Assembly: GCA_002104945.1 (NCBI GenBank)
Contig: MCFH01000126.1
Location: 1 to 34,954, forward strand
Direction: 5' to 3'
Origin: Piromyces finnis finn
Lineage: Eukaryota > Fungi > Neocallimastigomycota
DNA length: 34,954 nt
Shown: positions 1-34,792 of the stretch, one piece after another
How the letters are laid out: each line of letters opens with the position of its first letter
Numbering within the stretch: the stretch's first letter is position 1
Notes under the pieces: generated by a model
What the model was told of the DNA's origin: nothing
Seen by the model: the letters and a program-made list of their open reading frames with translations, nothing else
Databases searched by the model: none
Translations under genes and position numbers: made by a program

Positions 1-780
1 TAAAAGAAATTATCACATTCATAGAAGATTAGAATTTATTTTAATAATTTATATATATAATATATAAGACATTCTCTAAATCCGATTAAAAGTAACAGAT
101 TATTATTGTATATAAATTAACATGTATTTTTCAATAAATTGTTCAATTTAGAACTACTTAAATTTTTAAAATTTATTTTTTAAAATGTTTTTAAAGAATA
201 TTAATCATTTATGCTTTATTATGAAACACTATTATTTTAAATAAAGAACTTTAATTGAATATTTTTTTATATATTAATATTTATAATAAACAATAGAATT
301 CCATATTTTTAATATATTTATTAAGTTCATTTATAATAAAAAATTTATTATTATTTTCATTGTATATTATTTATATAATATTTATATATTAATTATTAAA
401 TAATATGTATTATATATTTTATATATAAATATAATTATTATATAGAGAATTTCATATTATTTAAACCAATAAACTTAAATAATTAATTTGGATATTATAA
501 ATATATTATATTTAATTTATTCTTAATATTTAGACGGCATGTAATTAATTTATTTAAATTGTTACACAATTAAATTTCTTTATAATTATAATATTTATAT
601 AATAATTAAAAATATATTTAGCGATTTCGATTTTATAAAAGATTAAAATCACATTTAAAATATTATAAAATTTATAAGTGTAGTATCATAAACATTAATC
701 CTATATATTAAATAGTTTCAATATGCAAGTTTTACTTTCAATTATATTAAAATTCTAAACAAATTATTAAATGTAAATTA

Positions 781-1013
781 CAAAATAAAATATTATTTAT
801 ATTAATATAATTAATGTATATTTATATTTTAGCCGTCAATTTATTTTAATGTACAATTCTAGAATTTATTATATAATGAAAAGTTTAATATACATTAAAT
901 TTATTATTTAACAATAGTTAATTATAAAAATATTAGTTTATATCATTAAATAATAGCTTTTTTTTAAAAAAATAATAAAAAAATATGCTTGTTAATTCAA
1001 AATTAATTGTTAT
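781..1013 (+). promoter_or_regulatory. Orphan diverged copy of the subtilase promoter plus first ~10 codons (MLVNSKLIVI)
   Basis: Direct-repeat similarity to 3140-3365, e.g. agccgtcaatttattttaatgtacaattctagaatttatt vs agccatcaatttactttaatgtacaatctagaatttatt. ATG at 985 (atgcttgttaattcaaaattaattgtt) mirrors ATG 3337 (atgcttgttaatttgaaattaatagtt). Similarity is lost after ~1013. Confidence 0.8.
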
Positions 1014-1995
1014 ATTTTATTTATAAAATTTAAATTATAATTATGATAATAAGATTTAATATATAAAAGCATAGAATATAAAATGTTAATAGCTTAAAAA
1101 GAGTATATTCAAATAATTTACGTTATGATATTTCTTTATTGTTAATTTTAATTTATAAATATGAATTAAATTCTATTTAATGATTTTTAATGAAAATAAT
1201 TTCAAAATATAAACTAATTTTTTGTAATAATAAATATTATTATGTTATACAGAAAATATATAAAAAATATTTAGAATAATGTAATAAAACTTTTTTATTT
1301 AATTAGGTTTTTACTTTATGTTGAATTTATTAATTATATAATTTTTATTAGTATCCTATACATGATACATATATTTATAAACATTTATAATCAAATACAA
1401 TTAAATATATTATAACATACTCTAGTTAAATTTAATATAAAACCATACATTTAATGTAAATATAAAATGATATAATGAGAGTGTATATATTTTTTTTCAA
1501 TTTTTATATAAATAAATAATAATTAAATATTAAAAATATAACTTTTTTACAATAGACTATAATAAGTAGATATAAAAAATAAATAAATATATACTTTTTA
1601 CATTTTATTTATTAAATTATTAAATATTAAATATAATTTTAATTTTAATTTTTATTACAATTTCCATAAATAATATAGAATATAATTCAAATTTATTAAA
1701 TAATTTTTTAAAATTTAAAAAATTATTTAAAATAAATTAAATTAATATATATATTGAAATATTGAAATAAAAAATTAATGAATTATTTAATATATATATA
1801 TAAATTATTTGAATTTTTATTTAACTTTTTTTAATAAATTTTCTACTTTAATTGTGGTTGAAATTATATTATTTGTTGTTATATAATAATAATAGCTTTA
1901 TACTCTGTTGTTGTTAGAGTTTCAATATAATTTTTATTTTTGTTCTATTCTATTTATAATTTTTGTATGAATTAGGGTTTTTATATTCTTTTATT

Positions 1996-3062
1996 TTAAT
2001 ATATCTGAGTAATAAAGATAATATGGTATGCAATGCCATTATTACTGGTTAACAATTTGTTATTTTTTTTTATAAACAATAATATTTGGTGAATCTCTAC
2101 TTTTTTATTTTCATAATTATTAAATGATTCCATCAATTTAAAAATATAATTAGTTTTGGAACATTTATTTATAGTTAAATAATATGATTTATTACTTCTT
2201 TCTTTACTAATATTTAAACAATAGTCAGATGAACTTCCATTATTATTTACTAAATACATATATATAAAGGATTGTTTTCATTTTTTATTAAACAATTAAT
2301 ATATTTACTGAGTGATTTATTATTTCCACAATATTTTGCCTTAATTAAATTAAAATTTTTTAATTCATTAACTCCAAAATAATAATTTTCACCTAAACAT
2401 TCTTATAAATATTGCTATATTAATTTTTAGTTGTAATACTAATTTCTGTTATGGCTAATATCTCGGTAATATTTTTGTAATAAATTAAAGTTTATTTAAA
2501 CTTTCTTTAATACTAAATGGTATTGAAATAATTAAATTATTATTTTTATTGTTATATTGAATACAATTACCAATTCAAATTGGGCATCCATTATCACGTC
2601 ACAGTTATTTTTTACTTTCCCCATAATATCCATATTTACTACAACATTTATTATAGTTACATTTAATATTACGATATTGTGCTCCACATCTTTTATCTTC
2701 TATATAATTTTCATATTCAATAGCAACGTCTGAACGATTATAATTTCCTTTATATTTCAACATTCTTATTAATAGTATAAGTATATATTTCATTAATATA
2801 TTATTAATCACATTCCATTTTATAATATGAACATAAAAATTTATATTTTGAGAATCCAATATTTTATTCAGAAGAATATATTCCATTGTGGATTATTAAC
2901 TGTAGTAAATTCTGAATTAGCATCCCATAATTCATAAGATATATAATCCCAATTTGAATGATTTATTATACCTGGGTAATTTCCATTCTCATCTTCTAAT
3001 ATATTTATATATATATGGTCAAATTAAAATCTTTAATTTATTAATATTTGGAAATAAACCAT
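1996..3062 (-). pseudogene. Pseudogene: CBM18 (hevein-like chitin-binding) plus ricin-B-like lectin protein, left-arm copy
   Basis: ORF pieces 2605-2886 (RCGAQY..KCNYNKCCSKYGY) and 1996-2259 (DYCLNISK..LTINKCSK). Mirror of 17655-18725, with multiple frameshifts. Confidence 0.75.
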
Positions 3063-3336
3063 TGGATTAAATATTTTATAAATAATATATTTACACCTTT
3101 TCCGTAATTTGAATTTTTATGCTTCTATAATATTTAAAACAAAATATAAATATTTATTTATATTAATATAATTAATATATAATTATATTTTAGCCATCAA
3201 TTTACTTTAATGTACAATCTAGAATTTATTCTATAATAAAATTTAATTTACATTAAATTTATTATTTAATAAAAGTTATAAAAATATTAGTTTATTGCAT
3301 AAAATAATATCTTTCCTCCTTTAAAAATAATAAAAA

Positions 3337-5154
3337 ATGCTTGTTAATTTGAAATTAATAGTTATTAATATTGTATTAATATTATTCTACAAATTTATAT
3401 TTTGTAGTAATGAAATTACCGAATATAAAGAAGACGATTATTATTTAATTTATGTTAATAATACATATTTAGGTAATAGTCATTCAAATAAGTATTTTAA
3501 AAAGCAACAAGAGATAATGAATTCATTGAGGAATTCATGAATACTCTTGATGCTTGATAGAAAAAAAATCAAATACTTATAAAAACCAAGAAAAATTAGA
3601 AAAAATATCTAAACTACACTCATTAAAAAAAAGAGAAAACAGTATAAATATTAATGAATATTCAACTTATGGAAAGCAACTCTAGGTGAAACATCAGTAT
3701 TCTTGCTTATCTTTTAATAATTTAGTTGACATTATAAAATCATTTCCTTTCGTAATTAGTTGTGAAAGGATATGGAATATCAGTCGCATTCATATTATAG
3801 CAAATCTGACATTTTATTAGAAACACAATGGAATAATATTAGTATAAAAAAGAATACAGATTTACATTTATCATTAATATCTCAAGGTATGTTTAATGAA
3901 AAATTAATAAATAAATATGATACAAACTATTATTATCCTGAATCATCAGGAGAAGCATTGACATTTTCATATTAGATACAAGTTTCGATTTTAGAACTAA
4001 AGATTTTTCAAATATAGAAAAACGCATTGTAAAATGTGCAATAAACATTACAGACGGCGATAGAAAAATACCAAAATCCTCGAAATTTTGTTTTTCTTCA
4101 TTAAATCAAAATAATCATGGTAAGGAGTTGCTTCAGTAGCGGCTGGATAAATCATGGGGTTGCTAGTTTATCCAATATATATGGGATTTTAATTAATAAA
4201 TCAATGACGTTAATATTATTGAATCTCTTAGATACATTTTATCAATATGTAGAAATAATAAAGGTATTATTATTATGACTTTTGGAGGTAACTACGAATT
4301 AAATGGAAAACAAAGTAATCTATTAAATATATTGAAGAATTTATTGGAAGGTTTTCAAGCATGGGCATAATTACAGTTGTTTCCGCGGGAAATGAAGGAG
4401 TAAATGTTTGTGATAAAGAAAAAACTTAGTACAATATCCATGCTTCTATAAAAATGTAATTTGTGTAGGTGGGATTGATAATGTTGGTGGTGACGATAAA
4501 TATGACATTTCGATGAGCGAGGCCTCTACCAATATTATGAATAATAAATATTATAGAAAAGCAAAGAACTCAAATTATGGAGAATTTGTAAATATTTATG
4601 CGCCATATTATGTTAAATATGATTATTGTGATATTAATAATAAATGTAGAACAATAGTCAATAGAGGTACATCCTTTTCAGCACCAATTGTAGCAGGTGT
4701 GATTGCAACAATTATGAGTGAGAATAATGATGTAAAATTTATTATACGACTGTTCTAAATTATTTGAATAAATTGGGTTTAAAGAATATTATTAATGGAA
4801 TTACAGAAGGACCTAATTTATTCATTAATAATGGAAAGCATGTTGTATATTCAAAAGACTATATTTATTACGGATGTGGAATTAATTCAGGGAAATCAAT
4901 CTTGTGAAAACAATCAATGTTGTGGTGCAAATGGAAAATGTTATAATCATAGTAACGATTTATGCAAAACCAGCAATGGATGTCAAGTTGAGTATGGTAA
5001 ATGTAATATTATAACAAGCAATTCAAAAATAACTTGTGTGGATTTAGTTATGGAAATGCCATTCAGGATATTGTTGTTCTTATGAAGGAATTTGTGGAAA
5101 AACAAATGATCATTGTGGCGTGGTTGTCAAAAAAACTATGGTCATTGTCTTTAA
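3337..5154 (+). CDS. Secreted subtilisin-like S8 serine protease with prodomain and two C-terminal CBM18 domains, left-arm copy. Frames are broken by many 1-bp deletions (possibly sequencing errors).
   Basis: Signal-like N-terminus MLVNLKLIVINIVLILFYKFIFC. S8 motifs appear across frames: YYYPESSGEG(I)DIFILD, cat-ggt (HG) at 4116-4121, VVSAGNE, YAP, NRGTSFSAPIVAGVIA. CBM18 repeats CENNQCCGANGKC...GCQVEYGKC and (C)CSYEGICGKTNDHCG.GCQKNYGHC. Stop TAA at 5152-5154. Confidence 0.88.
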
Positions 5155-6470
5155 GTAAGCTCATTATAAAATGTTAATTATTTTTATTTATAATTTAATA
5201 TGATAGTAAATTTTAAATAAAAGATATATTTATATTAAATTTATTTTTCAAAATATATTTAATGTAGTAATTAAAAAAATTGAAATAAAGAATTTAAAAT
5301 AAAATTAATAAATAAAAATAAAACTTCCAAAAAAAACATAACTGATTAAGAAATCATTTATTAATATAATTTATTGCTTTTAAATATATAACTTGAATAC
5401 TTTGTCTTTAAAATTATTTAAAAATTTTATAGCTTATTTTTATTATTTTATTTATATATAATTTTCCTTTATATCAAATTCAAATTTGTAAATAGTTTAA
5501 AAAAATATTTTTTATAATTTTAATATATTTTAATATTAAATAACATTTTTTATTATTATTTTTAAATTTAAATATAGTATTATTTAACTATGTAAATTTT
5601 TTGAAAATTTTTTTAAAAAAAAAAAAGTATTTCACTTTTATTTTATTTTGTTATAATTTTATTTTAACTTTACTATAAGAAAATATTCAAATGAAATGTA
5701 AAATTAAATTTAAAAATCATTTATTAATTTTAAAACTGGAAATTATGTATATATTTTTAATTCTTTATGAGTTTTTTAATATTTTTTAAGGTAAAGTCTA
5801 GGAATTTATATTCTTCTTTTAATGTAAATTACATCTCTAATCTTGTTTTGTGTCACGTGTATATCATTGAAATAATAAATTTATTAATTTATGTTTTCTT
5901 TACATATTATTCTTATTTTATTCCACCTCTAAAAATATTATATTCAACCATTGAGAAGAAAAATAAAAAATGATAGTAGAAAAACTATATATATTAAGAT
6001 CTCAAATAAAAATAATATGTTTATTACTATATTTTTATCAATTTAAATAAAGTATTATTCAATAAAATAATAATATTCCTAATATTTAAAATTGTATACT
6101 AATTTTTTAGCTATTTTTTTTTTTTTTTTTTCATTTTTTTATTTAATTATTCAATCATTAAAAAAATTAGATCAAAAGGTTTTTTAATATTTGAACGTTA
6201 ACATGAATAAAAAACTTCATTTTATTACTTTTTTATTATATTTTTATTTTAAAAAATAATTATCATACGGATTTATTAATATAAAATAAAATATATATAT
6301 TTTTTTTTTGAATTATTTATTTTTAAGATATCCTTTTAATATAATCAACAAATCACTTAAAACATTTATAAAATCTGTTTTTAATTGCTATGAATAATAA
6401 ATTGATCTTTCTATTATCTCTCCTAAATTTTTTAATTCTTTTAAAATATATTTTGAAATTTATTTATTTA

Positions 6471-6494
6471 GTTAGTTAGTTAGTTAGTTAGTTA
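6471..6494 (+). repeat. (GTTA)6 microsatellite; mirror (TAAC)5 at 14186-14205
   Basis: Directly visible. The unit number differs between the arms (6 vs 5). Confidence 0.9.
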
Positions 6495-6679
6495 CTTGTT
6501 TATTTGAAATGAATATACAATATACAATACAAATACTAGGAAGATAATATACTTCTTGCATTTATTATTTAATTTGTGATTTACATTAAGTATAATACAC
6601 ATTAATATAATAAATATTAAATAAAAATAATAAAATATATATATAAAGATAAAAATAAAATTTAAAATAATATTGCATA

Positions 6680-7075
6680 AAAGTTCAATTATTCTGTAAA
6701 TTTACTATGTGGAAATGGTCTACCTAATAAACTAATTGAAATAAAAAAAGAGAATATCAGGTATTATAGTATGGTATCCATTAAACTCTCTTATGAGTTC
6801 TTTAGGCTTTCATTCGAAGAAATATTAATATTGGAAAGACTTCAGCGCTCTTGATTACGTTAGGTTTTTACTAAACTTATCAAAAAGTAGTTTCATTGAT
6901 CTATTAATGATAAGAATTGTTTTAGTAGAAAAAACTGCGAAACTCTCTACATATGAAACATGAAACCCCGATGAACTGTAAAGCTGTTAACTTAAATATC
7001 TCTTGTTCCACCTTATTGATTTATAGTATATCATAAGCGAAAGTTCCACCAAGAAGGAACGAAGGAACGTAATCA
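6680..7075. other. GC-elevated island, probable decayed coding or transposon relic (mirror ~13600-14000)
   Basis: Clearly higher GC than the flanks. A protein-like stretch LPNKLIEIKKENIRYYSMVSIKLSYEFFRLSFEEILILERL is followed by frequent stops. No family recognised and strand uncertain. Confidence 0.35.
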
Positions 7076-10000
7076 ATAATATAATACATAACCTAATAAG
7101 AAATTCAAAATGAATTTAAAATTTTTAACTTTTAATAAGTGACTGAAAATAATCTAGTATATAAATATTTCATTTGATTTCCTTCTTCTTCTTGATATAT
7201 TTATTATTAAAATATTTTGCTAAAAAAAATAAAAAATCTTTAAATAATTATACAAAAGCATATTAATATTATGTATATTATGTAAGTTAATATTTAATAA
7301 TTATAAAAAATATATTAAAATATAATGATTATTATGGATATTAAAAATAAGAGACATTATTTTTGTAATAGTTAAATATTTTGATTTGCCCTATTCATAT
7401 ATATGTAAATAATTTGGAAAAATAATTATCTAAATTAGCAACTTTAACATCTAATTTTTATTTTTTTTTTATTTTCAATAGCATGTAAATCGTATAATTA
7501 AAGCCATGAAACTTAAATGTAATTAATAAAAATTTTTGTTTTTTCATACTTAATTATTATAATAAAATTTGTTTTAAATGTCATGATAAATGATTATAAT
7601 TTAAAATTAATTTGTATATATTAATATAAAAAAAATGTTAATATATTGTATAATGAAACATTTTCTATTTCTTATTTTCAAAATTATTATTATCATCATT
7701 TATCTTGACTTAGCCATCTCTTTTTATTATTTCTTTAATATTAACTATTTTCGCTTTAAATTTTCTGAATATTGACCATTTTTTAAATAAAATATATAGA
7801 ATTGATATCAACTTTAATTAATATTACTACTTTTAACATTATTGCTTATTACTATTATTATTATCTTTAATATTATTATTACTTATATTTATATTTTTAT
7901 TTCTATTGTTATTATTATCATTGTCATAACTATTATCGCTTCTGCAATTATTGATAAAATTATTTAAGCAGATTTTATAATATAATTGATCTTGATCTTA
8001 AGATTGTATTGCGTAATATGGATATAACTTAATATTTCATTAACCTATATTCAATACTATAAATAACAATTTTCAAATAAAGATAATAAACCAATAAATT
8101 AAATCAATTATTTTGATTACTTTAACTTAGCACCCTTAGTAATAGACGATAGTAAACAATGGATGATTATATCACAATTTAATTTAAAGCTTTAGTTTCT
8201 CAAATATTCATTTACATAATAATGTTAATCTTTTATTGATTTCATTTTGTATCCTTTCTAATAAAAGTTTTAATCACACTAAATAATTTATATTGTTTTA
8301 AATTTTATTATTATAATCATTATTATTGTTGTTGTTGTTGTTGAAAATGATATTCAATTTATTTTATTGTTTATTTTCCAAATTTTTAATGTAATTGAAT
8401 AAGTAAATGATAAAACAATTCGAATTTTTCTGTCTTTTTTTAAAAAAAATATTTAATATCTATTCTGCAATATTTTATATTTTGATGATAATGATGAAAT
8501 ATACAATTTTTTAATAGAATATAAATATGAATTTATATAACTATGTAAACTTTTACAATTAATCGTATTCTATTAATAAAATCCTTTTGAATAATCCTAT
8601 GTTTATTTCTATTTTAGTCAAGTAATGGAATATAATGTTGATGCTCTGTTAATTATTTATAAATCACGTACTAATTTTTTTAAAATAAATAAACTGAAAC
8701 GGATCCTTCTAAAATTTTGTTATTTAGAAATTTATAACTGATTATTTCCTTTAATGTTACATTTATATCAGTATAATAGAAGAAATCGGATTAAGTTTTG
8801 TAGGAAAATAGAATATTGAATCTTTCATGTTATTAGAATCATTTGATAAAATTCTTTATATATATGTTCCAAGTAATTATCTTTTTCATCAATTATTTCA
8901 AGAATCTTTTTGACATTATTAACTATATTTTCTACAAAGGTTCTACCATAATAATGTATATATCCTAAAATAATTCCAAATCTTATTATTTTAAAAATGT
9001 GTTAATTAATCTGATTTTTATAATTTACTTTAAAATGATTTCCAACTTTTTCAAAAAATAAATATAAATGCTTAAAAAACAAGAAATATTAACTTACTCA
9101 AAAAAAGCCACAAAATAATTTTATTGTTATTTATATTTTTTCATTTTGAAATTGATAACAATTAATATAACCCATTTATACATTGACAATACATAAATTA
9201 ATTATTACATTTGGAATTTAAAAAAGATCTATTTTTGATTAAAGAATTACAATTGTTTAGCTGGAATTATTTTTTTATTATTTAAATTTTTCTTATTTTA
9301 ATATATTATAATGCTACAATTTTTAAAATGATATATTTATATAATAAAAAAATAAAATATTTAAATCTTTATACATAATATTTAAATATTAATATACATT
9401 AATGCATAAGAATATATTATATACATTATATTGTATTATTTTTATAGGCCACAATATAAAATATAGAATTATAAAATTAAATAATTCTTTGTAACTATTT
9501 TATTGGAATTTGTAAAATAAATTGAAAAGTATTTTATTACATTAATATATAAGCCACAATATAAATATATGTCATTGATTTTAAAGAACAGTAAAGTATT
9601 TATATTTATATAGTATTTCTTTATCATAAAATATTAATGAAGTTGACTTGATATAAAACTATAAATCCTTATTAAAGGATTTTTTTACTATATTTAATTA
9701 TTAAAGATGTATAATTATAAAATCAAATTTATTGAGTTTTAATAAATAAATAAAAAATAATTGAATTTAGGCCTTTATATTTAGATTAAGTATATTTTAA
9801 ATGATTTATTAAACATCAAAACTGCTATATTTCTTCATTTAAAAAAATATATTATTAGTTAATAATATTATTGAAATAAAATTATTAAAATATCTTTTAT
9901 TCATTTATAATACTTTATTTAACTATTTTCATTATAAAACTGTATAGTATTTTAGAATTGTATATATTTTATAAGTATATTTTTATTGAAATTGAAATTA

Positions 10001-11549
10001 ATATTTAAAATTATAAAGGTTTGTTTATAATATTTAATATTTATTGATTTTGTTATGTTTAAATTTAAATATTTTATTTTAATATATATATACAAATTTA
10101 TATATTTAGTTTTATAATAATACACATGGAATAACTAATTATCTAAATTTTTTTAGAATTCACTATAGTTTCTAGTGTATTGTGGTTATTTTTAATATCT
10201 TAATATGTAAATGATTGTAAATATTTTTTATAATTTAGTATCAATAAGGAAAATAAATATGTAATAAATGGAAAAGGTTAAATTATAACAAAATTTTATT
10301 TTTGAATAACTAATCCATTTAGATATAATTTTTATTATTTCTTAGAAAATATTTTACATTTTTCATTTTATTCTATATTTATAGGATTTTTATAATATAA
10401 TTAAATCCTTACAAATTACACTAGTAAAACTAATAGTGAATTCTTAAAAAGATTTAGATAATTCTAAAGGTCTTATTTCCATTGTTGTATTATTATTTTA
10501 AAGATCTATATTAATTATAATTAATTTTTGTAATATTATATGATTAATAATAAATATATATATTTAATATTTATAAATAACCACAAAATTTTCAATTAAA
10601 TATATTAAATTATTATAATTATACAAGACCTTTATAATTTTAAAATATATAATTTCCAATTTCAATAAAAAATATACTTATAAAATATATTACAATTCTA
10701 AAAAATACTATAACAGTTTTATAATGAAAATAGTTAAATGAAAGTATTATAAATGAATAAAAGATATTTTAATAATTTTATTTCAATAATATTATTAACT
10801 AATATATATATTTTAAATGAAGAAATATAGCAGGTTTTGATGTTTAATAAATCATTTAAAATATACTTAATCTAAATATAAAGGCCTAAATTCAATTATT
10901 TTTTATTTTATTTATTAAAACTCAATAAATTTGATTTTATAATTATGACATCTTTAATAATTAAATATAGTAAAAAAATCCTTTAATAAGGATTTATAGT
11001 TTTATATCAAGTCAACTTCATTAATATTTTATGATAAAGAATACTATATAAATAAATACTTTACTGTTCTTTAAAATCAATAATATATTTATATTGTGGC
11101 TTATATAATTAATGTAATAAATACTTTTCAATTTATTTTACAATTCCAATAAAATAGTTACAAAGAATTATTTAATTTTATAATTCTATATGTTTATATT
11201 GTGGCCTATATAAAATATATACAATAATGTATATAATATATTCTTATGCATTTAATGTATATTACATATTTAAATATTATGTATAAAGATTTAAATATTT
11301 ATTTTTTATTATATAAATATATACATTTTAAAAATTGTAGATTTATAATATATTAAAATAAGAAAAATTTAATAATAAAAAAATAATTCCAGCTAAACAA
11401 TTGTAATTCTTTTAATCAAAAATAGATCTTTTTAAATTCCAAATGTAATAATTAATTTATGTATCGTCAATGTATAAATGGGTTATATTAAATTGTTATC
11501 AATTTCAAAATGAAAAAATATAAATAACAATAAAATATTTTGTGGCTTT

Positions 11550-12700
11550 TTTTGAGTAAGTTAATATTTCTTGTTTTTTAAGCATTTATATTTATTATTT
11601 TGAAAAAGTTGGAAATCATTTTAAAGTAAATTATAAAAATCAGATTAATTAACACATTTTTAAAAATAATAAGATTTGGAATTATTTTAGGATATATACA
11701 TTATTATGGTAGAACCTTTGTAGAAAATATAGTTAATAATGTCAAAAAGATTCTTGAAATAATTGATGAAAAAGATAATTACTTGGAACATATATATAAA
11801 GAATTTTATCAAATGATTCTAATAACATGAAAGATTCAATATTTTATTTTCCTACAAAACTTAATCCGATTTCTTCTATTATACTGATATAAATGTAACA
11901 TTTAGAAGGAAATAATCAGTTATTAAATTTCTAAATAACAAAATTTTAGAAGGATCCGTTTCAGTTTATTTATTTTTAAAAAATTAGTACGTGATTTATA
12001 AATAATTAACAGAGCATCACATTATATTCCATTACTTGACTAAAATAGAAATAAACATAGGATTATTCAAAAGGATTTTATTAATAGAATACGATTAATT
12101 GTAAAAGTTTACATAGTTATATAAATTTCATATTTATATTCTATTTAAAAAATTTGTATATTTCATCATTATCATCAAAATATAAAATATTGCAGAATAG
12201 ATATTACAATATTTTTTTTTTAAAAAAAGGCAGAAAAATTCGAATTGTTTTATCATTTACTTATTCAATTACATTATAAAATTTGGAAATAAACAATAAA
12301 ATAAATTGAATATCATTTTCAACAACAACAACAACAATAATAATGATTATAATAATAAATTTAAAACAATATAAATTATTTAGTGTGATTAAACTTTTAT
12401 TAGAAAGGATACAAAATGAAATCAATAAAAGATTAAATTATTATGTAAATGAATATTGAGAAACTAAAGCTTTAATTAAATTGTGATATATCATCCATTG
12501 TTTACTATCGTCTATTACTAAGGGTGCTAAGTTAAAGTAATCAAAATAATTGATTTAATTTATTTGGTTTATTATCTTTATTTGAAAATTGTTATTTATA
12601 GTGTTGAATATAGGTTAATGGAATATTAAGTTATATCCATATTACGCAATACAATCTTAAGATCAAGATTCAATTATTATTATAAAATCTGCTTAAATAA
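11550..12700 (+). pseudogene. Probable decayed gene relic of unknown family (mirror ~8000-9100 on minus)
   Basis: Short protein-like pieces such as GYIHYYGRTFVENIVNNVKKILEIIDEKDNYLEHIYKEFYQMILIT (11690-11830, preceded by ttttag) and modestly elevated GC. No long ORF. Confidence 0.3.
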
Positions 12701-15534
12701 TTTTATCAATAATTGCAGAAGCGATAATAGTTATGACAATGATAATAATAACAATAGAAATAAAAATATAAATATAAGTAATAATAATATTAAAGATAAT
12801 AATAATAGTAATAATCAATAATGTTAAAAGTAATATATTAATTAAAGTTATGATATCAATTCTATATATTTTATTTAAAAAATGGTCAATATTCAGAAAA
12901 TTTAAAGGAAAAATAGTTAATGTTAAAGAAATAATAAAAAGAGATGGCTAAGGTCAAGATAAATGATGATAATAATAATTTTGAAAATAAGAAATAGAAA
13001 ATGTTTCATTATACAATATATTAACATTTTTTTATTATTAATATATACAAATTAATTTTAAATTATAATCATTTATCATGACATTTAAAACAAATTTTAT
13101 TATAATAATTAAGTATGAAAAAACAAAAATTTTTATTAAATTACATTTAAGTTTCATGGCTTTAATATATACGATTTACATGCTATTGAAAATAAAAAAA
13201 AAAATAAAAATTAGATGTTAAAGTTGCTAATTTAGATAATTATTTTTTCCCAAATTATTTTACATATATTATGAATAGGGCAAATCAAAATATTTAACTA
13301 TTACAAAAATAATGTCTCTTATTTTTTAATATCCATAATAATCATTATATTTTAATATATTTTTTATAATTTATTAAATATTAACTTACATAATATACAT
13401 AATATTAATATGCTTTTGTATAATTATTTAAAGATTTTTTATTTTTTTTAGCAAAATATTTTAATAATAAATATATCAAGAAGAAGAAGGAAATCAAATG
13501 AAATATTTATATACTAAATTATTTTCAGTCACTTATTAAGAGTTAAAAATTTTAAATTCATTGTTTGAATTTCTTATTAGGTTATGTATTATATTATTGA
13601 TTACGTTCCTTCGTTCCTTCTTGGTGGAACTTTCGCTTATGATATACTATAAATCAATAAGGTGGAACAAAGATATTTAAGTGAACAGCTTTACAGTTCA
13701 TCGGGGTTTCATGTTTCATATGTAGAGAGTTTCGCAGTTTTTTCTACTAAAACAATTCTTATCATTAATAGACCAATGAAACTACTTTTTGATAAGTTTA
13801 GTAAGAAACCTAACATAATCAAGAGCGCCGAAGTCTTTCCAATATTAATATTTCTTCGAATGAAAGCCTAAAGAACTCATAAGAGAGTTTAATGGATACC
13901 ATACTATAATACCTGATATTCTCTTTTTTTATTTCAATTAGTTTATTAGGTAGAGTCCATTTCCACATAGTAAAATTTAAAGAATTAATTGAACTTTTAT
14001 GCAATATTATTTTAAATTTTTATTTTTATATTTATATATATACTTTATTATTTTTATTTAATATTTATTATATTAATGTGTATTATTACTTAATGTAAAA
14101 TCACAAATTAAATAATAAATGCAAGAAGTATATTATCTTCCTAGTATTTGTATTGTATATTGTATATTCATTTCAAATAAATAAGTAACTAACTAACTAA
14201 CTAACTAAATAAATAAATAAATTTAAAATATATTTTAAAAAAATTAAAAAATTTAGGAGAGATAATAGAAAGATCAATTTATTATTCATAGCAATTAAAA
14301 ACAGATTTTATAAATGTTTTAAGTGATTTGTTGATTATATTAAAAGGATATCTTAAAAATAAATAATTCAAAAAAAAAAATGATATATATTTTATTTTAT
14401 ATTAATAAATCCGTATGATAATTATTTTTTAAAATAAAAATATAATAAAAAAGTAATAAAATGAAGTTTTTTATTCATGTTAACGTTCAAATATTAAAAA
14501 ACATTTTGATCTAATTTTTTTAATGATTGAATAATTAAATAAAAAAATGAAAAAAAAAAAAAGATAGCTAAAAATTAGTATACAATTTTAAATATTTAGG
14601 AATATTATTGGTTTTTATTGAATAATACTTTATTTAAATTGATAAAAATATAGTAATAAACATATTATTTTTATTTCGAGATCTTAATATATATAGTTTT
14701 TCTACTATCATTTTTTATTTTTCTTCTCAATAGTTGAATATAATATTTTTAGAGGTGGAATAAAATAAGAATAATATGTAAAGAAAACATAAATTAATAA
14801 ATTTATTATTTCAATGATATACACGTGACACAAAACAAGATTAGAGATGTAATTTACATTAAAAGAAAAATATAAATTCCTAGACTTTACCTTAAAAAAT
14901 AGTTAAAAAACTCATAAAGAATTAAAAATATATACATAATTTCCAGTTTTGAAATTAATAAATGATTTTTAAATTTAATTTTACATTTCATTTGAATATT
15001 TTCTTATAGTAAAGTTAAATATAAAGTTATAACAAAATAAAAATAAAAGTGAAATACTTTTTTATTTTAAAAAAAATTTTTCAAAAAATTTACATAATTA
15101 AATAATACTATATTTAAATTTAAAAATAATAATAAAAAAAGTTATTTAATATTAAAATATATTAAAATTATAAAAAATATTTTTTTAAACTATTTACAAA
15201 TTTGAATTATGATATAAATGAAAATTATATATAAATAAAATAATAAAAATAAGCTATAAAATTTTTAAATAATTTTAAAGACAAAGTATTCAAGTTATAT
15301 ATTTTAAAAGCAGTAAATTATATTAATAAATAATTTTTTAATCAGTTATGTTTTTTTTGGAAGTTTTATTTTTATTTATTAATCTTATTTTAAATTCTTT
15401 ATTTCAATTTTTTTAATTACTACATTAAATATATTTTGAAAAATAAATTTAATATAAATATATCTTTTTATTTAAAATTTACTATCATATATAAATTATA
15501 AATAAAAATAATTAACATTTTATAATGAGCTTAC

Positions 15535-17376
15535 TTAAAGACAATGACCATAGTTTTTTTGACAACCCACGCCACAATGATCATTTGTTTTTCCACAAAT
15601 TCCTTCATAAGAACAACAATATCCTGAATGGCAATTTCCATAATTAAATCCACACAAGTTATTTTTAGAATTGCTTGTTATAATATTACATTTACCATAC
15701 TCAACTTGACATCCATTGCTGGTTTTGCATAAATCGTTACTATGATTATAACATTTTCCATTTGCACCACAACATTGATTGTTTTCACAAGATTGATTTC
15801 CCGAATTAATTCCACATCCGTAATAAATATAGTCTTTTGAATATACAACATGCTTTCCATTATTAATGAATAAATTAGGTCCTTCTTTAATTCCATTAAT
15901 AATATTCTTTAAACCCAATTTATTCAAATAATTTAGAACAGTCGTATAATTAAATTTTACATCATTATTCTCACTCATAATTGTTGCAATCACACCTGCT
16001 ACAATTGGTACTGAAAAGGATGTACCTCTATTGACTATTGTTCTACATTTATTATTAACATTACAATAATCATATTTAACATAATATGGCGCATAAATAT
16101 TTACAAATTCTCCATAATTTGAGTTCTTTGCTTTTCTATAATATTTATTATTCATAATATTAGTAGAGGCCTCGCTCATCGAAATGTCATATTTATGGTC
16201 ACCACCAACATTATCAATCCCACCTACACAAATTACATTTTTATAGAAGCATGGATATTTTACTAAGTTTTTTTCTTTATCATAAACATTTACTCCTTCA
16301 TTTCCTGCGGAAACAACTGTAATTATGCTCTTGCTTGAAAACCTTCCAATAAATTCTTCAATATATTTAAATATATTTAATAGAATTACTTTGTTTTCCA
16401 TTTAATTCGTAGTTACCTCCAAAAGTCATAATAATAATACCTTTATTATTTCTACATATTGATAAAATGTATCTAAGAGATTCAATAATATTAACGTCAT
16501 TGATTTTATTAATTAAAATCCCATATATATTGGATAAACTAGCAACCCCATGATTTAGTCCAGCCACTACTGAAGCAACTCCTACAGCATGATTATTTTG
16601 ATTTAATGAAGAAAAACAAAATTTCGAAGATTTTGTTATTTTTCTATCGCCGTCTGTAATGTTTATTGCACATTTTACAATGCGTTTTTCTATATTTGAA
16701 AAATCTTTAGTTCTAAAATCGAAACTTGTATCTAATATGAAAATGTCAATGCCTTCTCCTGATGATTCAGGATAATAATAGTTTGTATCATATTTATTTA
16801 TTAATTTTTCATTAAACATGCCTTGAGATATTAATGATAAATGTAAATCTGTATTCTTTTTTATACTAATATTATTCCATCGTGTTTCTAATAAAATGTC
16901 AGATTTGCTATAATATGAATGCGACTGATATTCCATATTCCTTTCACAACTAATTACGAAAGGAAATGATTTTATAATGTCAACTAAATTATTAAAAAGA
17001 TAAGCAAAGAATACTGATGTTTCACCTAGAGTTGCTTTCCATAAGTTGAATATTCATTAATATTTATACTGTTTTCTCTTTTTTTTAATGAGTGTAGTTT
17101 AGATATTTTTTCTAATTTTTCTTGGTTTTTATATGTATTTGATTTTTTTTCTATCAAGCAATCAAGAGTATTCATGAATTCCTCAATGAATTCATTATGC
17201 TCTTGTTGCTTGTTAAAATACTTATTTGAATGACTATTACCTAAATATGTATTATTAACATAAATTAAATAATAATCGTCTTCTTTATATTCGGTAATTT
17301 CATTGCTACAAAATATAAATTTGTAGAATAATATTAATACAATATTAATAACTATTAATTTCAAATTAACAAGCAT
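15535..17376 (-). pseudogene. Secreted S8 subtilase plus two CBM18 domains, right-arm copy, probably pseudogenised
   Basis: Three consecutive ORFs (17026-17376, 16367-16936, 15535-16401) rebuild signal-prodomain-S8-CBM18x2. A 10-bp tandem duplication (atatatttaa x2, 16361-16380) causes a frameshift and stop between catalytic His and Ser. Motifs are degraded: HAV instead of HG(T), GTSFSVP instead of GTSFSAP. Confidence 0.88.
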
Positions 17377-17654
17377 TCCTTTATTATTTTAAAGGAGGAA
17401 AGATATTATTTTATGCTATAATCTAATATTTTTATAACTTTTATTATATAATAAATTTAATGTAAATTAAACCTTTCATTATATAATAAATTCTAGATTT
17501 GTACATTAAAGTAAATTGATGGCTAAAATATAATTATATATTAATTATATTAATATAAATAAATATTTATATTTTGTTTTAAATATTATAGAAAGCATAA
17601 AAATTCAAATTACGGAAAAGGTGTAAATATATTATTTATAAAATATTTAATCCA

Positions 17655-18725
17655 ATGGTTTTATTTCCAAATATTAATAAATTAAAAGATTTAATTTGAC
17701 CATATATATATAATGAATATATAGAAGATGAGAATGGAAATTACCCAGGTATAATAAATCATTCAAATTGGGATTTATACTCTTATGAATTATGGGATGC
17801 TAATTCAGAATTTACTACAGTTAATAATCCACAATGGAATATATCTTCTGAATAAAATATTGGATTCTCAAAAATATAAATTTTTATGTTCATATTATAA
17901 AATGGAATGTGATAATAAATATATTAATGAAATATATACTTATACTATTAATAAGAATGTTGAATATAAAGGAAATTATAATCGTTCAGACGTTGCTATT
18001 GAATATGAAAATTATATAGAAGATAAAAGATGTGGAGCACAATATTGTAATATTAAATGTAACTATAATAAATGTTGTAGTAAATATGGATATTATGGGG
18101 AAAGTAAAAAATACTCTGACAGTGATAATGGATGCCAATTTGAATTTGGTAATTGTATTCAATATAACAATAAAAATAATAATTTAATTATTTCAATACC
18201 ATTTAGTATTAAAGAAAGTTTAAATAAAACTTTAATTTATTACAAAAATATTACCGAGATATTAGCCATAACAGAAATTAGTATTACAACTAAAATTAAA
18301 TATAGCAAATATTATAATGAATGTTTGGGTGAAAATTATTATTTTGGAGTTAATGAATTAAAAAATTTTAATTTAATTAAGGCAAAATATTGTGGAAATA
18401 ATAAATCACTCAGTAAATATATTAATTGTTTAATAAAAAATGAAAACAATCCTTTATATATATGTATTTAGTAAATAATAATGGAAGTTCATCTGACTAT
18501 TGTTTAAATATTAGTAAAGAAAGAAGTAATAAATCATATTATTTAACTATAAATAAATGTTCCAAAACTAATTATATTTTTAAATTGATGGAATCATTTA
18601 ATAATTATGAAAATAAAAAAGTAGAGAATTCACCAAATATTATTGTTTATAAAAAAAATAACAAATTGTTAACCAGTAATAATGGCATTGCATACCATAT
18701 TATCTTTATTACTCAGATATATTAA
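17655..18725 (+). pseudogene. Pseudogene: N-terminal region of unknown fold, degenerate CBM18 and ricin-B-like lectin, right-arm copy
   Basis: In-frame TGA at 17697-17699 and frameshifts near 17845 and 18460. CBM18 RCGAQYCNIKCNYNKCCSKYGYYGESKKYSDSDNGCQFEFGNC has lost two conserved Cys. Ricin-like YCL...INKC. The 5' end abuts the divergent subtilase promoter and looks truncated. Confidence 0.75.
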
Positions 18726-18832
18726 AAATAAAAGAATATAAAAACCCTAATTCATACAAAAATTATAAATAGAATAGAACAAAAAATAAAAATTATATTG
18801 AAACTCTAACAACAACAGAGTATAAAGCTATT

Positions 18833-18900
18833 ATTAATTATATAACAACAAATAATATAATTTCAACCACAATTATATTATTTGTTGTTATATAATTAAT
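18833..18900. repeat. Perfect 30-bp inverted repeat with 8-nt loop, right arm only
   Basis: attaattatataacaacaaataatataatt (18833-18862), loop tcaaccac, then its exact reverse complement (18871-18900). Confidence 0.95.
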
Positions 18901-19752
18901 TTCAACCACAATTAAAGTAGAAAATTATTAAAAAAAGTTAAATAAAATTCAAATAATTTATATATATATTAAATAATTCATTAATTTTTTTATTTCAATA
19001 TTTCAATATATATATTAATTTAATTTATTTTAAATAATTTTTTAAATTTTAAAAAATTATTTAATAAATTTGAATTATATTCTATATTATTTATGGAAAT
19101 TGTAATAAAAATTAAAATTAAAATTATATTTAATATTTAATAATTTAATAAATAAAATGTAAAAAGTATATATTTATTTATTTATTTATATCTACTTATT
19201 ATAGTCTATTGTAAAAAATGTTATATTTTTAATATTTAATTATTATTTATTTATATAAAAATTGAAAAAAAATATATACACTCTCATTATATCATTTTAT
19301 ATTTACATTAAATGTATGGTTTATATATTAAATTTAACTAGAGTATGTTATAATATATTTAATTGTATTTGATTATAAATGTTTATAAATATATGTATCA
19401 TGTATAGGATACTAATAAAATATTATATAATTAATAAATTCAACATAAAGTAAAAACCTAATTAAATAAAAAAGTTTTATTACATTATTTACTAAATATT
19501 TTTTATATATTTTCTGTATAACATAATAATATTTTATTATTACAAAAAATTAGTTTATATTTTGAAATTATTTTCATTAAAAATCATTAAATAGAATTTA
19601 ATTCATATTTATAAATTAAAATTAACAATAAAGAAATATCATAACGTAAATTATTTGAATATACTCTTTTTAAGCTATTAACATTTTATATTCTATGCTT
19701 TTATATATTAAATCTTATTATCATAATTATAATTTAAATTTTATAAATAAAA

Positions 19753-19989
19753 TATAACAATTAATTTTGAATTAACAAGCATATTTTTTTATTATTTTTT
19801 TAAAAAAAAGCTATTATTTAATGATATAAACTAATATTTTTATAATATAACTATTGTTAAATAATAAATTTAATGTATATTAAACTTTTCATTATATAAT
19901 AAATTCTAGAATTGTACATTAAAATAAATTGACGGCTAAAATATAAATATACATTAATTATATTAATATAAATAAATATTTATATTTTG
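19753..19989 (-). promoter_or_regulatory. Mirror copy of the orphan subtilase promoter/start remnant
   Basis: Reverse complement of 781-1013, with the minus-strand ATG at 19782. Confidence 0.8.
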
Positions 19990-22467
19990 TAATTTACATT
20001 TAATAATTTGTTTAGAATTTTAATATAATTGAAAGTAAAACTTGCATATTGAAACTATTTAATATATAGGATTAATGTTTATGATACTACACTTATAAAT
20101 TTTATAATATTTTAAATGTGATTTTAATCTTTTATAAAATCGAAATCGCTAAATATATTTTTTAATTATTATATAAATATTATAATTATAAAGAAATTTA
20201 ATTGTGTAACAATTTAAATAAATTAATTACATGCCGTCTAAATATTAAGAATAAATTAAATATAATATATTATTTATAATATCCAAATTAATTATTTAAG
20301 TTTTATTGTTTAAATAATATGAAATTCTCTATATAATAATTATATTTATATATAAAATATATAATACATATTATTTAATAATTAATATATAAATATTATA
20401 TAAATAATATACAATGAAAATAATAATAAATTTTTTATTATAAATGAACTTAATAAATATATTAAAAATATGGAATTCTATTGTTTATTATAAATATTAA
20501 TATATAATAAAACAATATTCAATTAAAGTTCTTTATTTAAAATAATAGTGTTTCATAATAAAGCATAAATGATTAATATTCTTTAAAAACATTTTAAAAA
20601 ATAAATTTTAAAAATTTAAGTAGTTCTAAATTGAACAATTTATTGAAAAATACATGTTAATTTATATACAATAATAATCTGTTACTTTTAATCGGATTTA
20701 GAGAATGTCTTATATATTATATATATATAAATTATTAAAATAAATTCTAATCTTCTATGAATGTGATAATTTCTTTTATGGAGTCCTATATTCTTAGTAA
20801 GTAACATATCATTTATTTTTACTAATCTACTAAAATATGACTATATACGATTATATTATTAAATAATGTTTTTATAACAATTTATATTATATCAAATTTT
20901 ATATCTAAAAAAAAATACAAATAGAATAAAAATAGTTAAAAAAATAAAGATATACAGTTGAAAATATATCTTGAGATTAAAAACCCTTTATATTCATTTT
21001 TATTATTACTATTAATAACAAAAAATTAATTTAATTTTAATTAAAAATTTACATTATTATAGAAACTTAATAATTTATGTATTAATTCACTTATATTGAA
21101 ACATTTAGTATAATAGAATCAAGCTACAAATTGTATATAATAAAGAAATTCTTCATGTATATTAAATTTTAATTAATATTATATATTGATAATTATAATA
21201 TGTTAATAAAATTTATATAAAATAAAGTTTATATAATATTTTTAAAGGAAACATTATTTAATGAAAAAATATAATATATTTTTACTCTTTAAGTAATTGA
21301 CTAATTAATATTGTTTTAAAAAGAGAAGTTATATTAAGTCATTTATTTTACAAATAATTAAAAAATATATATAAATTATCTTAGTTTTTATATAATATTT
21401 TTATTTATTAATTATTAATAGTATTAATTACACAAAAGTTTTAATGAAATTTTTATAGAATTTTGTTTACATACATTTTATATATAAATATAGTATTGCT
21501 TAATATATTTATAAATGCATTTTTCTATAATACATAATAAACTTTATTTTATAATTATATATATGAATGAAACACTACTTAAAATAATTTATATTTTTAA
21601 TTAAAATTACATATATACTAATTATAATTTTTTTTAAATAACAAGTTCATTTCTTTATTTTTATAATAATTTTAAAGTATTAAAGAAATGTTGACTATTT
21701 TTAAATGCTTCCAGAAGATAGTTATGTTCCCCTGATATTTAATATTGGATAATAATAGATCTAGAGGCTCCATGTATATAATTAATAGTTGCTACCATTT
21801 TATTTATACATTAAGCTTTGCCACATATATTCATATAACATATAAACTGCCTCTATATTCCCCTTATTAAAAAGAAATATATATAATTTAAATTCAATTA
21901 TAATATTAAAATTCTCACTTAAAATATTGAGAGAGTAACAAAGTGTTAATAATACAATTTATAATTTGAATTTAATATATGATTAATTTAATATAATTAT
22001 AATTAAATACTATATTTAGTATTATATATTTAATATTTTAATAAAATTTAAATAAATTTAATATGTTATAAAACTTTTATCTTTACATATTATTATTATT
22101 ATAAAAAATAGGGTTTAGATTTTATTAAAACCATAAATCTTAATAATCATAATTTATTTTTAAATTATGATTATTGGTTTAAATATATTAGATATATTAA
22201 AATTTATATTTTACTATAATAGTATTTATATTTGTTAATTTTAATTAATATCGAATCATATATATTTTATTTTTTAATTATTATATTTAAGCTTTATAAA
22301 ATAAAAAAAATAATTAGTAATAAAACCAAAATTTTGTAAAATTAGTAATTTTTAAAAATTTTTATATATATTTGTGAAATTATTATTATTTCTTTAAATA
22401 AAAATATTGAAATCATATTAAATAAAGTAGTGAAATAAAAATATATAATCATAATATTTTAAATATA

Positions 22468-23190
22468 ATGAATTTAAAAGAATTACTAAATATTATTAAT
22501 GTTTTACAGATTATATACTATATTATTGTTGCAATTATTGTTATAGGAATTTTAACTATAATAATAATCTATATAACTAATAAAAGAAAAAACATTTTTA
22601 ACAAAAATATAAATAATTTAAAAGAAAAAAGGAACGAAAATAATGATAAAAACAAATATGTTAACAATGTTAATAATTTAAAACTATGCGTTTCAAAAGA
22701 AAATAAAATAAATAATGAAAAGGATAATAATAGTAATAACAGTAATAAAATTTTAACTAATATTAATACCAATATATCATCAAATTTAAATTCGAATAAA
22801 AATAGTAGTAGAAAAGAGATATACTTAAAAAAAAGTTTTAATAATAATAATACATTATTACCTAATGAACCACCAAATTTAATTATAAGTATGCCTAGTG
22901 CACCTTCAGAGAACATTATTTATAGACCTTGTGCACCATCGGAAAACATTATTAATAAACCTTGCACCCCTTCAGGAATAATTGTAAATAGTAAAAATGG
23001 ATGTTTTGAAACTACTAATAATGTATCTAACGTTCAATATATAATGAATGATAATATATATAGTTCAAAGTCTAAAATAATAGAAAGAAATTCAATAATT
23101 CGTAAAGAAAACGATTTAAATAATATTTGTGCGCCTCTTTCTCCAATTAATATATCATTTATAGAAACATCTTTTTTCCAATCAATATAA
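22468..23190 (+). CDS. Single-pass membrane protein (N-terminal TM, KRK stop-transfer, Asn-rich tail with three 11-aa P-x-A/T-P-S repeats); function unknown
   Basis: 240-codon ATG ORF, far longer than expected by chance at this AT content. Hydrophobic IIYYIIVAIIVIGILTIIIIYI followed by KRK. 33-bp tandem units at 22894, 22927 and 22960. Confidence 0.75.
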   Translation: MNLKELLNIINVLQIIYYIIVAIIVIGILTIIIIYITNKRKNIFNKNINNLKEKRNENNDKNKYVNNVNNLKLCVSKENKINNEKDNNSNNSNKILTNINTNISSNLNSNKNSSRKEIYLKKSFNNNNTLLPNEPPNLIISMPSAPSENIIYRPCAPSENIINKPCTPSGIIVNSKNGCFETTNNVSNVQYIMNDNIYSSKSKIIERNSIIRKENDLNNICAPLSPINISFIETSFFQSI

Positions 23191-23940
23191 TCCAACAATT
23201 CATAAAATTTTAAATATCACAAGTTTAAAGTGTAATATATAAATTTTAAAGCACTCGATTGTGAGGTAAAATTTTAAAATATATGAAATTTATTTATCTA
23301 TATAATTAATTTTTAAATATTTATTATGATTTTTAATAATAATTATTAATATTTTTATTCAAATATACTACTAATTTTTTGAAATAAAAAATAAAATTAT
23401 TATTTAGCATTTATAAATAAAATATAAGTAATGCTAGTTTCAAAAAAATAATAAACTCTAATTTAAAATTAAAAATATTAAAAAGTTAATTATATAGGTA
23501 GTTTATGAAGAATAAAATTAATAAAAACTAAATAAAAAATAAAATAACTAATGAAACTATATTAAGACAAATATATAATAAAAATTAATTTTGTTCAAGA
23601 AAATACCTTATTATTTTACATATAAGAAAATCATTAATTATAATTATATGTATATATGAAATGAATAAAATAAAAGAAATTTAAATGAAATTTTGCTAAA
23701 AATATTGATGTATATTTAATTATTTGTTATTAATTATTATATAATTTATTTATTCTTTTATTTATTTTTAATATTTTTTGAAGAAAGAATCTAATATTTA
23801 TAACTATTTATATAATATAATAAAATAAAATAATATATATATATTATTTATATCATTTAAAAAAAAATTATATAAATTTTAAAAATAAATAGGAAATTCT
23901 AATTTAAAAATTTATGTAACTACGATTTTTATATATTAAA

Positions 23941-26178: not shown

Positions 26179-26224
<46 letters not shown>

Positions 26225-33039: not shown

Positions 33040-33068
<29 letters not shown>
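31053..33068 (+). CDS. Secreted S8 subtilisin-like protease with prodomain and CBM18; 5' part of a gene interrupted by a SINE
   Basis: Signal peptide MKYLLKILSLICLFLFTVEVKG. Intact triad: D in GEGVDIFIIDRG (31785), H in HGTRVASVAAG (31968), S in GTSYSAPIVAG (32538), plus oxyanion FVASAGN. CBM18 at 32772-32915, then a Thr-rich linker. The last residues (SRSSFYPGC) and the stop come from the SINE. Confidence 0.93.
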
Positions 33069-33674
<606 letters not shown>

Positions 33675-33682
33675 AGAAAGTA

Positions 33683-34707: not shown

Positions 34708-34779
34708 TAAAACAATAATGATCAATAAAGATCAATAATAAAAAGTAATAGAAAATAACATCTTTAAAAATAATTCTAT

Positions 34780-34792
34780 AATAATAATAATA

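Follow-up and report, generated by a model that had tools for sequence, protein, structure and literature searches.

A 20.8-kb palindrome occupies one end of a contig of the anaerobic gut fungus Piromyces finnis, and the question that it raises is whether the organism carries such a structure or the assembly made it. The window, meaning the whole stretch of DNA that was analyzed, is the entire contig C31 (34,954 bp), part of an assembly of 56,455,805 bp in 232 contigs. Position 1 is therefore a true contig end, at which the left arm of the palindrome stops. The gene content of C31 is that of ordinary nuclear fungal DNA and includes a subtilisin with a chitin-binding domain; a match to a ricin-type lectin was also seen, and is weak, falling under the Pfam cut-off. 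A G+C content of 10-30% had first suggested an organelle or bacterial (mitochondrial or endosymbiont) origin. This candidate was rejected in favor of a nuclear fungal contig, as the search of C31 returned 0 rRNA or other Rfam families and 0 tRNA, the contig holds long, asparagine-rich open reading frames, and the size of the assembly likewise fits a nuclear fungal genome.

The palindrome is truly written in the contig. Positions 10179-1 align in inverted orientation with positions 10417-20778; of the 10,407 alignment columns, 96.57% are identical (84 mismatches, 220 gap openings), and 193 inverted seed pairs lie within the window. The same alignment bears out the earlier claim that identity is high in the outer parts of the arms and collapses toward the center. 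Two further contigs, C224 of 119.6 kb and C52 of 24.9 kb, hold the locus in linear form, with no self-inverted match in the stretches compared, and both extend 14-20 kb beyond the axis. Measured against these, the window resolves into the following parts:

Positions 1 to 9972, reverse strand: outer, clean part of the left arm; an inverted copy of C224 from 41505 down to ~31450, 97.0% identical to C224 and of draft quality.
Positions 9973 to 10237, reverse strand: noisy zone of the left arm; C224 ~31450 to 31160, deletion-rich.
Positions 10238 to 10345, forward strand: central turn of ~108 nt in a single orientation; C224 ~31050-31160, with raw-read-like noise.
Positions 10346 to 10679, forward strand: noisy zone of the right arm; C224 ~31160 to 31450, insertion-rich.
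Positions 10680 to 20778, forward strand: clean part of the right arm; collinear with C224 31450-41505 and 99.2% identical to C52.
Positions 20779 to 34954, forward strand: the right arm continued, now in single copy; runs collinear with C224 41506-55104 at 99.5% identity (18 mismatches in 12.3 kb).

The original prediction had the two arms meet at ~10293 with no unique spacer. That position is the midpoint of the central turn, and a spacer does exist: the 108 nt at 10238-10345 match C224 31050-31160 in one orientation only, with the left-arm homology to C224 ending at ~31156-31160. At the other end of the palindrome, the right arm crosses position 20778 without any discontinuity.

The two linear copies bear directly on the nature of the join. 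Window positions 10251-33039 align with C224 31070-53797 at 98.9% identity, and upstream of 31070 C224 goes on with sequence that the window lacks; a self-comparison of C224 11001-51000 found no palindrome. Positions 2-24915 of C52 are collinear with C224 from 41503 down to 16473, directly across the axis. Moreover, position 1 of C52 is the same genomic base as position 1 of C31, which is the outer end of the left arm. This end falls inside sequence that continues normally both in C224 and in the right arm, and neither a telomere, a new junction nor a unique flank was found past it; the arm simply stops at the contig end. C31 is accordingly a small redundant contig whose locus C224 carries in linear form. 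Because two other contigs carry the locus straight through the axis, these results argue strongly that the palindrome is a misjoin.

Over one and the same interval, C224 31050-31450, identity drops to ~80-85% in both arms of C31, and indels there are biased in opposite ways, the right arm being insertion-rich and the left arm deletion-rich. When this interval is divided into 50-bp bins, counts per bin reach 13 mismatches and 13 insertions in the right arm and 9 mismatches and 10 deletions in the left arm, against 0-1 in C52; the noisy zone of the left arm shows mismatches at roughly 15% and deletions at roughly 17% of a bin. C52 and C224 are both clean there and do not differ from each other. 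The left arm had been described as a deletion-riddled version of the right. It is indeed deletion-rich near the axis; with C224 as the reference, however, the right arm is noisy as well, over the same 400 bp. The deletion-rich profile of the left noisy side is unlike the insertion-rich profile usual for raw PacBio sequence, an observation that counts against the explanation we favor below. C52 carries a stutter at C224 31340-31444, in the form of a 104-bp tandem duplication (2.0 copies, 96% matches). In the 1.3 kb next to the axis the arms have approximately 8 private substitutions in common, all absent from C224 and C52, so the near-axis arms derive from one molecule or version that the linear contigs do not represent. 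As C52 is C224-like near the axis, it is not a clean witness of the same haplotype being linear there, which is a second point against the favored explanation.

Private differences, counted at >700 bp from the axis, occupy 233 columns in the left arm, 14 in the right arm and 23 in C52. Those of the left arm comprise 109 mismatch, 103 deletion and 21 insertion columns. Expressed as events, they amount to 80 deletions versus 18 insertions, or about one indel event per substitution, and 66 of the deletions are of 1 bp. These 1-bp deletions are concentrated in runs, with 52% in runs of ≥3 (33% background) and 23% in runs of ≥5 (9% background).

Apart from these private changes, the arms differ by structured mutations that had been taken as a sign of biology, on the ground that noise should not create them. 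Equal differences separate the linear contigs, however. Two versions of the locus exist, a C224 type and a C52/right-arm type, each present in a linear contig, and at 33 marker sites where the right arm agrees with C52 against C224 the left arm alternates between both types. The mosaic of the left arm takes in a cluster of substitutions at a catalytic His motif, as well as a 39-bp indel. These sites, together with the protease gene concerned, lie as follows:

Positions 16558-16587: cluster of substitutions in the His motif.
Positions 18858-18896: 39-bp indel between the locus versions.
Positions 15535 to 17376, reverse strand: subtilisin-type protease gene in its right-arm copy, spread over three open frames and bearing a chitin-binding tail; catalytic His motif HAV..VVAG.
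Positions 3330 to 5160 (approximate), forward strand: left-arm copy of the same protease gene; His motif of the C224 type, HG..VAAG.

Clustered substitutions in this gene set the two arms apart, and private 1-bp deletions split its left-arm copy into smaller frames. C31 and C224 differ further by a SINE of 630 bp with an 11-bp target duplication, which is present in C31 (33040-33671) and missing from C224, and by substitutions at about 0.15-0.3% between the two versions. Since the structured differences are those between two versions found in linear contigs, they do not reflect divergence of the palindrome arms after a duplication. Likewise, an origin of both arms from a single haplotype with later divergence does not fit the 33 marker events, which alternate.

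We also considered what lies at the turn itself. A missed SMRTbell adapter turns an insert into a palindromic PacBio read, with one half for each strand; such a read should be symmetric about the insert end and carry an adapter of ~45 nt at its center. C31 differs in that its center is asymmetric, its ~108 nt being genomic and present in one orientation only, and a search for a 21-nt adapter core with ≤3 mismatches returned 0 matches. An adapter-like match is therefore absent from the axis, as had been predicted, and a missed adapter was rejected. The self-complementarity score of the turn core was 22, barely above shuffled sequences (9.6 ± 6.8; 21 of 500 shuffles reach 22). Short inverted repeats are present at the ends of the loop in C224, namely an 8-mer at 31071-31078 and 31163-31170, and a self-complementary 10-mer lies at 31160-31169. 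Inverted A/T repeats of 8-11 nt near both loop ends of C224 are nevertheless expected by chance at ~87% A+T, and none fits uniquely. Because of the 15-20% noise, the junction and any microhomology are not placeable to the base.

The assembly statistics agree with a PacBio-only assembly and not with the nanopore platform that had been supposed: the published Piromyces finnis assembly comprises 56.46 Mb in 232 contigs and was built from PacBio data only, using Falcon, FinisherSC and Quiver (review table, PMC5622200). FinisherSC merges dangling contigs and fills gaps from raw reads (bioRxiv 10.1101/010215), and C31 resembles the product of such gap filling in having a raw-like patch between clean sequences that end at the same reference coordinate. 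From the published pipeline we infer that FinisherSC was the program that made the join in C31.

Taken together, these findings lead us to conclude that the palindrome is very probably an assembly artefact that lies outside the consensus genome of the organism, one fold-back raw read having joined contig ends. A draft contig piece covering C224 31450-41505 would have been used twice. In its first use, the piece would have been joined correctly to the sequence past the axis to yield C52, leaving the 104-bp stutter as an overlap at the join. In its second use, it would have been joined in inverted orientation to the right-arm contig by way of a single fold-back (U-turn) PacBio raw read, and the gap filled by ~700 nt of that read in uncorrected form (window 9973-10679). 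With the locus then present three or four times, reads may have mapped ambiguously or favored the linear copies, and the junction and left arm would for this reason never have been polished. This account builds on features observed in the contigs themselves, namely copies of the locus in linear form, a start base common to C31 and C52, noise that coincides on both arms, the profile of errors and a mosaic of alleles, while support of the junction by a single read is suggested by its raw-like error and not by a count of reads. As the turn is ~108 nt long and free of adapter, a strand or template switch, or a snap-back hairpin molecule, is a likelier source of the read in DNA so rich in A+T than a missed SMRTbell adapter.

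The original prediction is thereby upheld in one of its two readings. The evidence supports the artefact reading, in which a long read folded back at the end of a contig, with PacBio as the platform and a finishing or assembly join as the probable immediate cause, whereas breakage-fusion-bridge, fold-back priming fixed in the genome and a hairpin replicon are not supported, given a locus that is linear in two contigs, a left end that coincides with the start of C52, and a right arm that runs on through 20778. Its description of the palindrome likewise held in part: the arms, the collapse in identity, the contig end and the lack of an adapter stood, and the missing spacer, the nanopore origin and the confinement of damage to the left arm did not.

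The alternative closest to the misjoin accepts the read and differs as to the molecule. The fold-back could have been a real but rare (sub-clonal) molecule in the culture, either a break capped by a hairpin or the product of a template switch during replication, arising at short inverted repeats of A/T, which one read copied faithfully and the assembler promoted to a contig. The adapter-free turn with its ~108-nt loop in a single orientation has the geometry of fold-back priming, and both the short inverted repeats at the two loop ends in C224 and the near-axis private variants common to both arms are in keeping with it. However, 8-10-mers made of A/T only are expected by chance at ~87% A+T, and noise blurs the junction at which they would have acted; in addition, an origin in vivo is indistinguishable from a product of DNA extraction, end repair or sequencing. 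We therefore consider such a molecule unlikely, and even if it existed it would not be genome structure, given the linear contigs. Quite unlikely, too, is the broader proposition that the junction copies real fungal DNA and that palindromes across the assembly reflect frequent fold-back events (hairpin-capped break or template switch) in anaerobic gut fungi, whose genomes are extremely AT-rich, as opposed to library or assembly noise.

If one homologue (the B version) carried an inverted duplication, fixed or heterozygous, that arose by fold-back inversion or breakage-fusion-bridge and whose arms have since diverged, the palindrome would be part of the genome. Real palindromes of this type reportedly occur as inverted copy-number variants and as inverted triplications in Aspergillus flavus, and C31 resembles them in its inverted duplication, its short asymmetric spacer and possibly an inverted microhomology. 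C31 also differs genuinely from C224 in the SINE and in ~0.15-0.3% of positions by substitution, and clustered substitutions in the protease gene separate the arms. Those clustered differences are nonetheless the same ones that distinguish the linear contigs, the left arm being a mosaic of them, and C52 is linear yet carries B-type alleles in the outer arm. In real fold-back inversions, multiple reads support the junction, depth is doubled and both arms belong to one haplotype. A fixed palindrome would have been crossed by many reads and polished, but the central ~700 bp of C31 is of raw quality on both arms; its left arm stops, to the base, at the start of C52; and the private changes of that arm are mostly 1-bp homopolymer deletions, unlike natural divergence. 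With linear copies of the locus set beside this raw-quality junction, we regard an inverted duplication as very unlikely. A hairpin-ended linear replicon or covalently closed chromosome end, suggested by shape alone as a palindrome at a contig end, is extremely improbable: the turn lies inside the contig, an arm has its outer end at position 1 amid ordinary sequence, the genes are ordinary nuclear fungal ones with no replication or resolvase gene seen and no rRNA or tRNA, and the locus lies within the 119.6-kb chromosomal contig C224, so that the linear copies contradict this reading as well.

Returning to the misjoin, fold-back reads are a described long-read artefact able to tangle assembly graphs (Heinz, Meyerson and Li 2026, PMC12870357). 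In such chimeric reads the locus is read along, turned and returned on the other strand, as in C31 (PMC12870357; Pacasus, bioRxiv 10.1101/173872). The little or no intervening sequence at the junction, the position at a contig end, the low quality at the turn and the want of support from other contigs are further points of likeness. A further point against the misjoin is that the survey profiling such reads found almost no fold-backs in its three PacBio samples (HiFi, Iso-Seq and Mas-Seq), all of them other than the older chemistry used for C31 (PMC12870357). C31 differs from the described reads in that the artefact sits in an assembled contig, made from older PacBio continuous long reads, and in that its arms were built for the most part from ordinary draft consensus, only ~700 nt being raw-like. 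Its position at a contig end, the linear copy elsewhere and the raw-quality junction beside clean copies are the marks of a fold-back misassembly.

These findings indicate that the palindrome should not be read as a gene amplification, a breakage-fusion-bridge scar or a hairpin replicon. They also serve as a quality flag, in that ~35 kb (C31) and 25 kb (C52) repeat a locus already contained in C224; such redundant copies inflate gene counts, for example those of the subtilisin family, and the unpolished frameshifts of the left arm would be mis-called as pseudogenes. A linear copy elsewhere, a start base in common with another contig, noise that coincides on both arms and a stutter at the join are forensic signs that can be applied to other palindromes of this genome. 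Finally, the redundant contigs reveal a second version of the locus, set apart by the presence or absence of a SINE and by substitutions in a catalytic motif, which bears on the question of ploidy in anaerobic gut fungi.

In a gapped self-alignment of contig C31, which makes up the entire window, positions 10179-1 paired with 10417-20778; the 10,407 aligned columns were 96.57% identical and included 84 mismatches and 220 gap openings. This agrees with the original prediction of two inverted ~10-kb arms. As likewise predicted, identity dropped steeply close to the centre and the left arm terminated at base 1, the contig end. A palindrome this large cannot have arisen by chance, and it is real in the text of C31. 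We nonetheless consider it very likely that the structure is not real in the genome.

The assembly was searched for other copies of the locus with 2 kb around the axis (~10293), and two further contigs were recovered, C224 (119.6 kb) and C52 (24.9 kb). Positions 31070-53797 of C224 were collinear with window 10251-33039 at 98.9% identity, while upstream of 31070 this contig carried on with sequence absent from the window; comparison of C224 with itself over 11001-51000 revealed no inverted match. C52 2-10223 corresponded to the right arm in reverse (99.2% identity). The next 14 kb of C52 remained collinear with C224 as far as position 16473, and C52 contained no internal palindrome. Two contigs, C224 and C52, thus run linearly through the supposed axis. 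In addition, base 1 of C52 and base 1 of the window are the same genomic base, the opening sequence being common to both contigs; in C224, as in the right arm, the corresponding point lies within ordinary sequence that is unchanged beyond. A shared arm end and contig start is expected from a shared draft piece or graph node, and is unexplained by a biological palindrome.

Both arms were aligned to C224, followed by a four-way alignment with counts per 50 bp. The left arm tracked C224 down to ~31156-31160 (window ~10229-10238) and the right arm from ~31050 (window ~10232). These limits leave ~108 nt (window 10238-10345) in one orientation only, with ~10293 as the midpoint. Self-complementarity of this core hardly exceeded that of shuffles (score 22 versus 9.6 ± 6.8; 21 of 500 shuffles reached 22), and, contrary to the original proposal, the centre was not spacer-less. 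The predicted lack of an adapter there was borne out, inasmuch as C31 contained no match to a 21-nt adapter core at up to 3 mismatches. In C224, short A/T inverted repeats occur close to each end of the loop, but noise blocks base-level placement of the junction. The loop and the lack of adapter-like sequence disfavour a missed adapter, and argue instead for a putative strand switch or snap-back hairpin.

Both arms were noisy across one reference interval, C224 31050-31450 (window 9973-10679), over which C224 and C52 were identical and clean, and the noise ended for both at one and the same C224 coordinate. The left arm was deletion-rich here, as expected from its description as a deletion-riddled version of the right arm, but against C224 the right arm was noisy too, being insertion-rich, with counts per 50 bp reaching 13 for insertions and 13 for mismatches. 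Exactly at the clean-to-noisy switch of both arms, C52 carries a 104-bp tandem duplication (10106-10321; 2.0 copies, 96% matches). Neither C224 nor C31 has this duplication, which is probably overlap stutter at a contig join. Three features from two contigs therefore converge at C224 ~31340-31450, which looks like a former contig end after a finishing step.

Private differences, columns at which one aligned copy departs from the others, were counted only at >700 bp from the axis:

Left arm: 233 private columns (109 mismatch, 103 deletion, 21 insertion)
Right arm: 14 private columns
C52: 23 private columns

Private events of the left arm comprised 80 deletions versus 18 insertions, with indel events about as common as substitutions. 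Of the deletions, 66 were 1 bp long; these fell in runs of at least 3 in 52% of cases and in runs of at least 5 in 23%, compared to per-base backgrounds of 33% and 9%, respectively. Judged from the alignments, this profile is that of consensus error, unlike natural divergence.

The features bearing on differences between copies, together with a 1,510-residue reading frame, are as follows:

15535-17376, minus strand (C224 36442-38166; C52 3379-5229): subtilisin gene of the arm, in three open frames in each copy
16558-16587 in the right arm (left arm ~4120-4148; C224 37337-37366): catalytic-histidine cluster
25024-29556, plus strand: 1,510-residue ORF without a Pfam match, asparagine-rich and with low-complexity runs
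33040-33671: SINE, ~630 bp; target duplication of 11 bp at 33029-33039 and 33672-33682

The right arm and C52 agreed against C224 at 33 events. Within 30 bp at the subtilisin catalytic histidine, four substitutions cluster with a single 1-bp indel. The motif is HGT..VAAG in C224 and the left arm, as in the intact paralogue at 31053-33068, and HAV..VVAG in C52 and the right arm. The in-frame version lacks the canonical motif, and the canonical version is frameshifted in C224. Frame breaks fell at differing positions in every copy of this gene, the left-arm copy being the most broken, so that at least some are residual indel errors rather than introns or true pseudogenisation. A 39-bp segment (18858-18896) was shared by C52 and the right arm and had no counterpart in C224 or the left arm. 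It contains an inverted repeat, has an 18-nt direct repeat on its flanks, and so has the appearance of a genuine indel polymorphism. Outside the palindrome, C31 and C224 differed by 18 substitutions in 12.3 kb, and C224 53787-53797 is the empty site of the SINE, a presence/absence polymorphism between locus versions. The SINE lies in the 3' end of a 671-residue subtilisin ORF, whose tail it replaces, and has near-identical copies (98-99%) at C224 26184-26730 and C52 14260-14811. By these sequence comparisons, both versions are genuine. The arm differences, predicted to be too structured for noise, are thus real, but they are not evidence of a biological palindrome, since they match two versions in linear contigs and the left arm is a mosaic: C52-like by the axis, C224-like across the protease gene and C52-like again at its outer end.

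The assembly comprises 56,455,805 bp in 232 contigs. In a review table (PMC5622200), the Piromyces finnis entry gives 232 contigs totalling 56.46 Mb, with PacBio as the sole read type and Falcon, FinisherSC and Quiver as the software; given this match we take the platform to be PacBio, not nanopore as first supposed. We propose that a 10-kb draft piece (C224 31450-41505) was used in two joins. One, with sequence beyond the axis, would have produced C52; the other, in which the inverted piece was joined via one fold-back raw read to the right-arm contig, would have produced C31. With the locus in three to four assembly copies, reads may have mapped ambiguously or favoured the linear copies, leaving the raw patch and left arm unpolished. 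Reads that fold back have been described as an artefact able to tangle assembly graphs (PMC12870357), in a survey whose samples did not include this older PacBio chemistry.

A fixed inverted duplication is very improbable, and a hairpin replicon scarcely credible: two contigs are linear across the axis, the left arm ends at the start base of C52, and arms of differing haplotype cannot come from one molecule folding back. A real but rare DNA molecule behind the fold-back is unlikely, yet retains a small probability. About 8 substitutions within 1.3 kb of the axis were common to both arms and found in neither C224 nor C52, indicating that near the turn both arms derive from one source unrepresented in the linear contigs; this could be a fold-back read or molecule, or one corrected read used both ways. 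C52 is C224-like there, and is therefore an imperfect witness that the second version is linear.

C31 has a G+C content of 10-33%, and a search of the whole window found no rRNA, other Rfam family or tRNA. Its long ORFs carry many asparagine runs; two encode subtilisin-type proteases that have chitin-binding tails, and there is a weak ricin-type lectin match under Pfam's cut-off; the 1,510-residue ORF is a predicted orphan protein of the fungus.

One locus occupies three contigs (C31, 34,954 bp; C52, 24,915 bp; C224 16473-55104), leaving ~60 kb redundant. The copies lie 0.15-0.4% substitutions apart, with many 1-bp indels besides, a pattern that points to unpolished duplicates as well as to a second haplotype or paralogous copy. 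This bears on the ploidy of anaerobic gut fungi.
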